NCBI GenBank assembly: GCA_000320545.1
Contig: ADNK01000004.1
Coordinates: 1 to 64,000 of the forward strand
Origin: Bigelowiella natans CCMP2755
Lineage: Eukaryota > Protista > Cercozoa
DNA: 64,000 bases
Direction: 5' to 3'
In this document: piece by piece, positions 7,078-10,603 of the stretch
How the letters are laid out: each line of letters begins with the position of its first letter
Numbering within the stretch: position 1 is the first letter of the stretch
Notes under the pieces: model-generated
The model's database searches: none
What the model saw: only the letters and a program-made list of their open reading frames with translations
Told to the model about the DNA's origin: nothing
Program-made: the position numbers and the translations under genes

Positions 7078-7571
7078 GTCGTCTTCCTCCCCCTTCAGCA
7101 GGAGTGCACTAGTGGTGGTGGTGGTGGTGATAGGGGGCAAATAATAGAGGCCCAGAGATCATCTCCGAACAGGCATTTTGTGTAAAGTGGTGAATGTAAT
7201 AATGTGCTGGAACAGGGAGGAGGATCAACTGTCGACGATGATGATTTGGATGGGATCTACTGCTATTTCCCCTTATAAATGTAGTAAAACCATGTCGCAG
7301 TATAAAAACGCCAATGCTTTTATAAAAAATCTTGAAGTCTCAAATCTCGCCCCTGTGCTCTGTCTCTTTTCTCCCCCCTTCTCTGCCTCACCGTCGCTAG
7401 GGAGAGCAAGGTGGCCTTGTAAAAATTAAAAACGTATGAGATAGCGATGCGACCATGCCGATGTTGCTTTCGAAGGAATTTCTACGAAATGCTCTAATGG
7501 CCGCCATTCCAACTTTCCAACATAGCACACACACACACACACTAGCACTGTCGCGTAGGCTACGGATGTCT

Positions 7572-7602
<31 letters not shown>

Positions 7603-7785
7603 TACTCGAACACAAACAGACGCAAACATGCAAACAAATATAAATACGGATGATGTTATGATAAAGAAAGTAAAACGGGTGAGGGGATCGGTGGAACCAG
7701 TATTGTGAAGGGGGATGGCCGACACTGCAGCGGTGAGAAGAACGCTGTTTCATTTGTAGTCGTTGAGAACCGGGTAATAGAGACG

Positions 7786-9475
7786 ATGATGCGGCAAGTC
7801 CACGCCTCGGTTCAAAAGGCGTATTCCAAATATGCTTCTGAGGGGAAGTTTGAGGATGACTGGGAAAATAATCTTCGGAGGCTTGGCTATGGTCGCCAGG
7901 AGATCGAGAAAATTCCCAGCACAAACATGCTGCGAGGTAAATCGACAAGTTCCATCAACAAAAATATGTGCTCCGTGTGATATATCCTTTCTTCCCTTTT
8001 TCCTTTCACAAACCTCACAATCAGCGGAATGCGGCGCAGGAAATCCCTTTAAGATGGGAATGCCTTCTCCTGGAGATTGGGTGGTAGACCTTGGTTGTGG
8101 CGCTGGAGTAGATTCCATCATCGCAGCATCGTGCGTAGGGCCATCAGGATGCGTTACAGGCATCGATATGACTGAGGTGCGTCCATATTCAGAATCAAAC
8201 GCCTTTCTCTCAGTTCTTGTCGAAAATGGACGGGCGTAAAATGCAAGCTATATATGTCCTGCAAAGCAGCAAATGCTGCACGACACCAAATGATTATTTA
8301 CGACCTCTGCAAGCTGAGCACCCTTTTCTTTTACTTTCCGAACTCATGCGTATTTGTGATATTTACCTCAGGGTATGATTCATGCCGCGAGGGACAATGT
8401 GAAGGCGGCTCGCAAAACCAACCCAATATCCGGTGGGGAGTAAATATGACGACTATGCCTTGGAATTAAAAATGTTATCCAACATAATTAAAAGCTCTTC
8501 GTACGCATCAGGAAAAGTAGAATTTCATGTTGCGAAGTTTGACGACCCCAAAGACGACAAAATGAGAAGAATCTTGCAGCACACAAGAGGTATCCGTCGT
8601 CGATATTGGTGTGTGTGTAGTCAGTCTCTCGATTGGACAAACCGTAACAAACCGCCTACAAAGCCATCGCTTCGTATATCTCTTGCTGGATGCTATTGAT
8701 GGGTTACAAGCGTTGAATTAGGTGTTGTCATATTGAAACAGGCAAAGCTTCTCTGGTTATATCTAATGGGGCTTTCAACCTCTCCCCCAACAAACGCGCA
8801 GCATTTCAGCTGGTAGTGCCTCACTGCGATATGTAATCGCTCTCTGATGACGAATTTGTTTCAACAGAATAGCTAAGATTTTCTTTAGATTCTTTCGGCT
8901 TTTACTTTCCGGTGAATACTGAATGCGAGATTTCTGTCAACGCAACATACTGCATGCAGGCATATGAGATGCTTGCCCCCGGAGCTCGCTTCCAGTTTTC
9001 CGACGTGGTAGTGGTACCAAAAACCACAGAAGGGGCGTGACCTCCTCCTGTTGCTTCTTCAAACTGCAGTGATGAGCGTGGGAATGCATGCAAGAGTGAG
9101 GGGAAGCAAGGTCAAGCGGACGAGCTCGCTAGAAACAACATGGTGGAGGAAGATGCTTGGGCAGCGTGAGTTACGGGATGCATCTCAGTCTCAGAAGTTC
9201 TCACTGAGATGCGCAAAGCCGGATTTCAAGACGAAAAAATGGTAAAAGTATAGAGTTGATAGTATTACCATGATGATGGTAATGATGATGCTAGCGATTC
9301 ATCAAGGGTGATCCTATTATTCGACGGCCATATGTCTTACTAGATTGGATGGACGGACTATTATTCTTCGCCTTCGACAAGAGGAGCCTTATTTTTCGCA
9401 AGAAAACCGCTCTGTCCCACCTATTCGAACGCAATGACAACATCCTTAAGGAATTCCATCTTAGGTCCTATGTAA
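7786..9475 (+). CDS. Arsenite methyltransferase (ArsM/AS3MT)-like SAM-dependent methyltransferase, probable selenoprotein with in-frame TGA at 9038-9040 and 9167-9169
   Basis: Exons ~7786-7936, 8025-8176, 8372-8432, 8512-~8589, 8742-8812, 8960-9241 and 9344-9475 give ECGAGNP, VVDLGCGAGVD (SAM motif I), VGPSGCVTGIDMT, VISNGAFNLSPNK, LAPGARFQFSDV, AWAA[TGA]VTGCIS...AGFQD and SSPSTRGALFFARKP. Additional 5' exons are possible. Confidence 0.88.
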
Positions 9476-9720
9476 TTTGCATTTACTACTTTAACATGTA
9501 TAAGTGAAGAACCTATTGAACTTTCTCCATCACATGCACATGCGTGTATGTGTACATTTGTGTGTGTTTGGCATAAACTGTGTACGTGATAATTTTTCTG
9601 CACACAGCGTTGGGTCTGGCGACGTTTGCAGCGATAATGCTTCGTCGCTATAAGTAAAGAAGTGTAAACTTTTGCACTTTCGGGAAGTTGTGGAGTTTTC
9701 AACCAACAATTAAAGCGGTG

Positions 9721-9790
9721 ATGTGAACATGAAAGCATCGATGCGAAAGCCAAGAATTTAATTTCTGGAGCAGCGGTGTTGGAATACAAT
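9721..9790 (+). promoter_or_regulatory. SECIS element (type II-like) in the 3' UTR of the ArsM-like gene
   Basis: ATGAA (9729-9733); helix AGCATCGATGC (9734-9744) pairs with GCAGCGGTGTT (9770-9780) at 10 of 11 positions; unpaired AAA (9746-9748); apical mini-stem CCAAGAA/TTCTGG; GGAA (9781-9784) completes the tandem G.A/A.G core. Confidence 0.75.
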
Positions 9791-10603
9791 GATTTTGATC
9801 ATGGCAATTATCACTGCAGGGTTCTACTACTCCTAGACTTGTCCTTTGCTACTTCTTCACCAGACATGTCTCGATGTGATTATAATGGTTGAGGACAGAG
9901 CACAGCACACGATCGATGCGATGGGTTAGCAGCAATGGTGATGATGATGATTCACACTTGTTAGCACGTGCATTAGAGCATGCGGCTGCTGCATGTGTGT
10001 AGGAGTTTTCCTTGCAACACGTTGAAACAAAAATCACACAATGGAAGCAAGCACGCAGCGTGGATGCAAAAATCCGAAAATGAAGCTAGAAAGCACTATA
10101 GATGCCACAGCAGCAGGTGCAACACAACATGCACGCACATCTCTAGATCTGGACATGCCCGCCCAGCTGCGCTTGTGGCCCACTGGCACCAGATCTCCCA
10201 GCATCAAGTGGTTTTGGCAAACACACCCAGCAGCAGAGTGATGTCACGGCACTGCGTGACGCAGTGACACACTGACGCAGCGACGTTCTGTCATGCATTT
10301 GAAGCACGATTGTCAGGGTCATGGAATCTCAGAGTCTTGATTTGGGCACGCACAGATCGTCACTGAAACAACGTGCGCGTTCTCCTAGCCTCTTCCAATC
10401 GACACTTTTCGTCCACTTCCAGTTGCGTTTGAGAAAGTTGTTCGATCCCTGCTCTCACACTCTGCTTTGACAAGGTTCGATCACAGCATGAAGGGTCGCA
10501 CCGGATCAAAATCACAGCAAAACAGTGCACGCTGAGGACGTGGGCTTCGAGAAGTTCGGATTGAAGGAGAAACAAGAAACAAGAAACACGGTTGAACGAC
10601 CAC

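Follow-up and report, generated by a model that had tools for sequence, protein, structure and literature searches.

A Probable Two-Selenocysteine ArsM-like Methyltransferase Encoded by a Nuclear Gene of Bigelowiella natans

Selenocysteine (Sec)-containing methyltransferases have been described from algae and from bacteria. Methyltransferase (MT) selenoproteins were reported for Ostreococcus and Thalassiosira (PMC2375036), the MT family is counted among the algal selenoproteins (PMC7539508), and bacterial arsM-type selenoproteins ("arsenite S-adenosylmethyltransferase") were described in the Global Ocean Sampling survey (PMC2398784). For Bigelowiella natans, 23 selenoproteins have been published in a text that does not say whether the gene treated here, at 7786–9657, is among them (PMC7539508). 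This gene lies on the forward strand of a 64,000-nucleotide stretch of contig ADNK01000004.1 from B. natans CCMP2755, referred to below as the window. It very probably encodes an expressed ArsM-like, Sec-type methyltransferase of 321 residues with two UGA codons, both read as Sec under the direction of a Sec insertion sequence (SECIS). An earlier reading of the window, made from the letters alone (the sequence-only reading), had proposed one such codon and had added that the class was not new. The descriptions cited above agree with the latter point, the family itself being an already known selenoprotein family; what is new is the second UGA, a loop insertion, a probable tail anchor and a corrected gene end.

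The algal MT selenoproteins (Ostreococcus tauri, O. lucimarinus and Thalassiosira pseudonana; PMC2375036), compared here by description only, are eukaryotic and dependent on S-adenosylmethionine (SAM), and they depend on a SECIS, as the B. natans protein would. Like the present gene, they are homologous to bacterial Sec ArsM-like proteins and come from marine algae with a large selenoproteome, whereas in B. natans there are in addition an upstream UGA, a loop insertion of some 32 residues and a probable C-terminal tail anchor. The bacterial Sec-type proteins (the NF047649 MTase/UXPK-star double selenoprotein and the ArsM fusions NF041536 and NF041537) are the top-scoring families for every informative piece of the B. 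natans sequence, and share with it the motifs C-G-x-G-N-P, I-S-N-G and W-x-x-U as well as a TGA at the same codon. Unlike them, the B. natans gene has no U-X-P-K C-terminus, DUF2284 or AhpD and ends in ...AAIMLRRYK-TAA; it also has introns, a probable tail anchor, a loop insertion and a candidate eukaryotic SECIS in its 3′ untranslated region (3′UTR). Canonical ArsM/AS3MT enzymes (CmArsM, 4fr0/4fs8/5eg5; Chlamydomonas, 5evj) belong to the same fold family, and Sec241 stands in the place of their As(III)-binding Cys224, but in B. natans the Cys72 position is Ala and the Cys174 position is Gly.

The Codon at the Conserved Cys Position

Transcript contigs from three separate studies and a low-depth raw RNA-seq run were aligned to window positions 7500–10500, and four extra transcript contigs (L016–L018 and L037) came from IMG samples. 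The contigs define an expressed nuclear gene of eight exons with a coding span of 7786–9657 on the forward strand. Exon 6 (8960–9241, forward strand) contains both TGAs, the lineage-specific loop of about 32 residues and the motif W-A-A-U-V-T-G-C. It is unspliced, and the contigs of the three studies cover it as a single contiguous piece at a word depth of 63–72 with zero base differences. The joints on either side, 8812/8960 and 9241/9344, occur in the contigs of the three studies and in L016–L018 and L037, with no joint inside the exon; as exon 6 is uninterrupted in every contig, both TGAs are retained in the mature mRNA. The sequence-only reading had translated this exon as ...EEDAWAA, the TGA at 9167–9169 and then VTGCISVSEVLTEMRKAGFQDEKM, which we reproduce, and had drawn an in-frame splice to the next exon, which the joint 9241/9344 bears out, exon 7 being joined in frame at 9344 (IGWTDYYSSPSTRGALFFARKP).

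The downstream TGA (9167–9169, forward strand; codon 241) is the second of the two and occupies the conserved Cys/Sec position of the family. Judged from the comparisons that follow, it would be read as Sec (Sec241) and replace the conserved substrate-binding Cys of W-x-x-C. Searches with the gene used single exons or pieces of natural transcripts, and TGA was read as X for alignment only. In a multiple alignment, the column of TGA 9167 is Cys in all 10 of the 10 full-length Cys-type homologs and TGA in L015, an ortholog from another species whose N-terminal domain is 53% identical, in agreement with the earlier claim that the TGA sits at a conserved Cys. The ortholog reads ...DDWSA-TGA-VSGC... 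and continues for 82 further codons that include the same hydrophobic tail; the piece after TGA 9167 is 42% identical to it over 78 aligned residues. A Cys follows Sec241 at +4 (U-V-T-G-C), as it does in L015, and the 80 residues after TGA 9167 match positions 206–262 of three NCBIfam Sec-methyltransferase models. Direct phmmer searches of the PDB with short exon pieces and with the 80-residue C-terminal piece returned nothing meaningful, and the link to CmArsM was therefore made through a profile of the Cys homologs, which matches CmArsM at an E-value of about 1e-45 and places the TGA 9167 column on Cys224. Two paralogs in the same genome carry Cys at this position (L-I-C-G-C and W-P-A-C).

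A phmmer search of exon 2 against 1.84 billion representatives, combined with a search using the truncated public protein, gave 268 relatives, 129 of which terminate at W-x-x, with TGA 9167 falling at the very next position. These typically have a length of 202 residues, 70 of them end in ENWAR, and 99 of the 129 also carry C-G-x-G-N-P and S-N-G, like the B. natans gene. At the locus of a bacterial member, the sequence runs ...ENWAR-TGA- and the frame goes on with A-G-F and ...VLFRAVKP.

Exon 2 matches Pfam Methyltransf_31 at 5.7e-8 and has its best NCBIfam matches in NF047649 (5.3e-17), NF041536 and NF041537, ahead of the generic ArsM model NF008823. The three are "exception" models for bacterial Sec-containing ArsM-like methyltransferases. 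The N-terminal 199 residues score 116.8 bits and the C-terminal piece 24–29 bits, against curated cut-offs of 460–575; exon 6 pieces alone gave no matches in NCBIfam or Pfam, the pieces being too short. By its motifs, the gene carries the Sec-type subfamily signature (C-G-x-G-N-P, I-S-N-G and W-x-x-U) and is a eukaryotic relative of the bacterial models, not an equivalog.

Among solved structures, arsenite methyltransferases come closest, and exon 2 matches PDB ArsM chains. The conserved As(III)-binding cysteines of CmArsM are Cys72, Cys174 and Cys224. The Cys72 column is Ala in B. natans (G-A-G-N-P versus G-C-G-N-P of 5evj), with a Cys two residues upstream that is also present in L015 and in Sec-type bacteria; the Cys174 column is Gly (I-S-N-G versus I-S-N-C), and of the three columns Cys224 alone is retained, in the form of Sec. 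On these residues the protein is not a canonical three-Cys ArsM, and, with two of the three canonical Cys absent, "ArsM-like" in the earlier reading is not to be read as arsenite methyltransferase. The same genome does encode a canonical three-Cys ArsM (paralog L001, C2571:313–3504; G-C-G-N, S-N-C, C-G-C), and a second paralog (L002, C2246:35356–38625), related to the present gene, is of the Cys type (I-S-N-G, W-P-A-C).

Sec Machinery and the SECIS Candidate

We searched the genome for tRNA-Sec, SepSecS and SelD/SPS. It contains one tRNA-Sec(TCA), scored at 68.5 bits and also called by ARAGORN, and encodes both SepSecS and SelD/SPS. Its GPx, MsrA and SelM/Sep15 genes each contain one in-frame TGA. 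A small selenoprotein gene cluster stands at C3223:16521–19316, where an MsrA gene and a GPx gene, each with an in-frame TGA, are about 2 kb apart on one strand.

A candidate form-2 SECIS was found at 9715–9804 on the forward strand, about 70 nucleotides past the stop codon and within the transcribed 3′UTR. Its core places AUGA (9729–9732) opposite GA (9782–9783), between helix I (9718–9722/9797–9801) and helix II (9734–9744/9770–9780; 11 positions, 10 pairs). The apex has an unpaired AAA (9746–9748) and a mini-helix (9750–9756/9763–9768) closed by a 6-nucleotide loop, UUUAAU. This site is the sole match to our SECIS descriptor in 128 kb (both strands of the 64-kb window), with 0.1 matches expected per shuffled strand. 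Two Sec-GPx genes of this genome are followed by candidates that share the AUGA-N...G-GA form-2 layout; outside this gene, SECIS candidates were located in three cases only. We infer from this architecture and position that the 9715–9804 hairpin would function as the SECIS of the gene.

Several points count against that assignment. The descriptor was written post hoc, after the candidate had been seen; an Rfam scan of 9400–10300 (E ≤ 10) finds no SECIS family; the folding energy of the candidate is ordinary (z = −1.22); and the corresponding hairpin of L015 has no canonical 3′ GA (GUAU instead of N-GA-N). The Rfam silence carries little weight, because SECIS_1 is nearly blind in this selenoprotein-rich genome, where it gives one weak match (24.8 bits) over the whole sequence. 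The L015 hairpin (L015:1140–1200), about 90 nucleotides past the stop, combines a strong helix I with an AUGAA core and an apical loop rich in A; it may be a SECIS of non-canonical form, may reflect an error of assembly or may not be the SECIS of this mRNA. A different candidate from a first, ungapped scan (9945/10003) was poor and was dropped. Downstream of the SECIS candidate, the 3′UTR also contains a second stable hairpin (9828–9922), with a mir-511-like match on the minus strand at 23.6 bits, well below the gathering score.

Sec decoding, as proposed in the sequence-only reading, is supported by the TGA of the ortholog, the relatives that end before the codon, the Sec machinery and the 3′UTR candidate. 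That reading had named three observations that would speak against it, namely removal of the TGA by splicing, loss of homology downstream and a genome lacking the machinery; the TGA is instead unspliced, homology extends past it and the machinery is present.

The Upstream UGA and Rival Readings

Where the sequence-only reading had treated TGA 9167 as a single recoded codon, the part of the exon that it elided holds another in-frame TGA at 9038–9040 (...PKTTEGA-TGA-PPPVASS...), so the proposal stood for the downstream codon and failed on the number. This first TGA (forward strand; codon 198, probable Sec198) lies in the loop between F-S-D-V-V and W-A-A-U. The loop is about 32 residues longer than in bacterial relatives and similarly long and Cys-rich in L015. 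Over the 123 codons past TGA 9038, the only stop is the conserved TGA 9167.

UGA 9038 is probably decoded as Sec too: a SECIS acts on any in-frame UGA, and a conserved C-terminal third lies downstream, which together make Sec the most likely outcome on present sequence evidence. Cases in which Sec was gained secondarily upstream of a SECIS already in place have been documented in algae (PMC7539508). In the MAFFT alignment, TGA 9038 falls at the C-C motif of five Cys-type homologs, facing one of its Cys residues (E-G-A-U versus E-G-A-C-C); in L015 it faces Ser, and a Cys comes two residues on. Pairwise alignment sets it against an Arg codon, CGA, of L015. A single substitution would suffice for either origin, TGC to TGA or CGA to TGA. 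The TGA is kept in all four B. natans sequence variants (the window and three others), which differ at only four positions, 8563, 9089, 9414 and 9726. Three of these changes are coding (M/T, C/S and C/Y), all at positions not conserved with L015, and the fourth affects one 3′UTR base, 3 nucleotides before the SECIS AUGA.

The case for Sec198 is weakened on several sides. No relative compared, L015 included, has a TGA counterpart at 9038, and the loop alignment there is ambiguous, with Ser, Cys or Arg opposite the TGA in different alignments. The three coding variants are all non-synonymous, with none synonymous, and the variants differ by only about 0.2%, because of which the shared TGA says little on selection. 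A homolog search with the C-terminal piece as protein and a metagenome scan with the two-ortholog alignment found no further orthologs. An intron excising TGA 9038 was considered and rejected: an acceptor at 9069 would be in frame only with a 33-nucleotide or 75-nucleotide intron, and no transcript shows either. That Sec198 is more than a passenger we put forward tentatively, and regard as somewhat unlikely. It may be an adaptive selenol that builds a Se-based metalloid or redox site with Sec241 and Cys245, or a CGA-to-UGA nonsense mutation rescued by the SECIS.

The alternative that deserves most attention is that TGA 9038 is a genuine nonsense codon, possibly from a CGA-to-TGA transition, and that the gene is a recently truncated or decaying copy. 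Its product would be 197 residues long, without the Sec241 site and the C-terminal domain, and the downstream homology would be a relic. The absence of a TGA or Sec at this position in any relative, the CGA codon of L015 in pairwise alignment, the 3:0 ratio of non-synonymous to synonymous variants and the end of the public model at TGA 9038 all agree with such decay. Yet a new UGA would be expected to be recoded and not to terminate, as a SECIS candidate and a Sec codon conserved in the family already lie further along the same mRNA, and the 123 downstream codons are free of stops save for the conserved TGA 9167. The transcript, with two exon junctions past 9038, was assembled whole at a word depth of 63–72 from three studies; the predicted tail anchor and the A-G-F and F-F-A-R-K-P motifs are intact, and the three polymorphisms fall at positions also variable in L015. 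Taken together, we consider truncation improbable.

Two further readings concern how the UGAs are treated and are less probable again. Other protists offer examples of both UGA read-through and UGA reassignment, and one or both codons might be read as Cys or Trp by near-cognate read-through or a variant code. This is very unlikely: the Sec system of the genome looks complete, and in many of its genes a lone TGA falls precisely where Sec is known to occur. The TGA at the codon 241 position is common to relatives from bacteria and eukaryotes, the stops are TAA here and TAG in the ortholog, and a SECIS-like element is present. Splicing could in principle remove TGA 9167, with which a consensus-like donor (GTGAGT at 9166) overlaps. 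However, a joint at 9165/9166 is absent from every contig and read, seven independent transcript contigs contain the TGA without a break, and use of the donor would break the downstream frame that matches the homologs, so that such splicing is hardly credible and would at most yield a rare isoform. The preferred reading is that of a methyltransferase with Sec at both codons.

Gene Structure, Proposed Mechanism and Meaning

The coding sequence from ATG 7786 comprises 963 nucleotides and 321 codons, with the UGAs at codons 198 and 241. All exons are on the forward strand and all introns are GT..AG. Exon 1 extends, according to the transcript contigs, from at or before 7619 to 7936, its transcript start lying upstream of the ATG, and its coding part (7786–7936, start MMRQVH...) is supported by transcript contigs, the L016/L037 alignment and translation. 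Exon 2 (8025–8176; joints 7936/8025 and 8176/8372) carries C-G-A-G-N-P and SAM-binding motif I (VVDLGCGAGVD). Exon 3 (8372–8432) is followed by a weak donor, GTGGGG at 8433, with the joint 8432/8512 present in three contigs; exon 4 (8512–8589) is defined by transcript contigs, and exon 5 (8742–8812) carries the I-S-N-G motif with Gly at the canonical ArsM Cys174 position. Beyond exon 6, exon 7 (9344–9464; IGWTDYY...GALFFARKP...) is set by transcript joints, and exon 8 (9608–10026) contains the last 16 codons, the tail ...SILALGLATFAAIML-RRYK, the stop TAA at 9655–9657 and the 3′UTR, which ends in the transcript contigs at about 9984–10046. The same exon structure is found in all four IMG contigs.

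The gene end at 9475 given by the sequence-only reading has to be revised. The last intron (9465–9607) is spliced out, as seen from the joint 9464/9608 in three contigs and in a single raw RNA read, and the open reading frame terminates at TAA 9655–9657, ending ...SILALGLATFAAIMLRRYK, with a different C-terminus that includes the probable tail anchor. Its expectation that gene callers would truncate the gene proved right, as the public JGI model Bigna1|84792 has only 197 residues and ends at the first TGA (9038). At the 5′ end, an alternative isoform removes 7735–7797 (63 nucleotides) and uses an upstream ATG, giving the N-terminus MADTAAV/HASVQ; where 7735–7797 is retained, a short upstream open reading frame precedes the start MMRQVH at 7786. 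Both forms occur among the transcript contigs. Within the region 7357–7936, a 5′UTR intron was noted at 7411–7663. Just beyond the 3′ end of the transcript lie a near-perfect palindrome, ACTGCGT-G-ACGCAGT, at 10251–10265 and a nearby copy, TGACGCAG; the palindrome might serve in the regulation of the gene that follows.

In the mechanism we propose, the form-2 SECIS hairpin about 70 nucleotides into the 3′UTR would direct UGA decoding through the tRNA-Sec machinery of the alga. Acting on any in-frame UGA of the mRNA, it would cause both UGAs to be read as Sec and give a two-Sec protein. By analogy with ArsM, Sec241 might hold the substrate, a soft metalloid or a chalcogen, beside SAM, with partner thiol or selenol groups possibly supplied by Cys53 (C-G-A-G-N-P), Cys245 (U-x-x-x-C) and perhaps Sec198. 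The C-terminus has a 15-residue hydrophobic stretch by hydropathy, followed by RRYK, which suggests a tail-anchored enzyme with a cytosolic catalytic domain.

Among the bacterial Sec-type homologs, those called as 202 residues and cut off at ENWAR/TGA (L027 and L031–L034; three 90% clusters) lie directly downstream of a chromate-transporter-family gene (PF02417), at a distance of 29–32 nucleotides, and a homolog fused to DUF2284 (L035/L036) lies amid ArsR-type helix-turn-helix genes. These neighbours fit a metal(loid) or chalcogen substrate without identifying it.

The public gene model is corrected here from 197 to 321 residues with two probable Sec, and the Sec-containing ArsM-like methyltransferases gain a member from Rhizaria. 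With both a Sec-type gene and a canonical three-Cys ArsM, B. natans is a tractable alga in which to ask what Sec-type enzymes methylate. In the second UGA, nature provides a test case for the gain of Sec codons in SECIS-bearing mRNAs. If Sec198 takes part in a Se-based site, it would stand in for the two missing ArsM cysteines; if it is instead a nonsense mutation rescued by the SECIS, the gene would provide a snapshot of how multi-Sec proteins originate and of buffering against UGA nonsense mutations.

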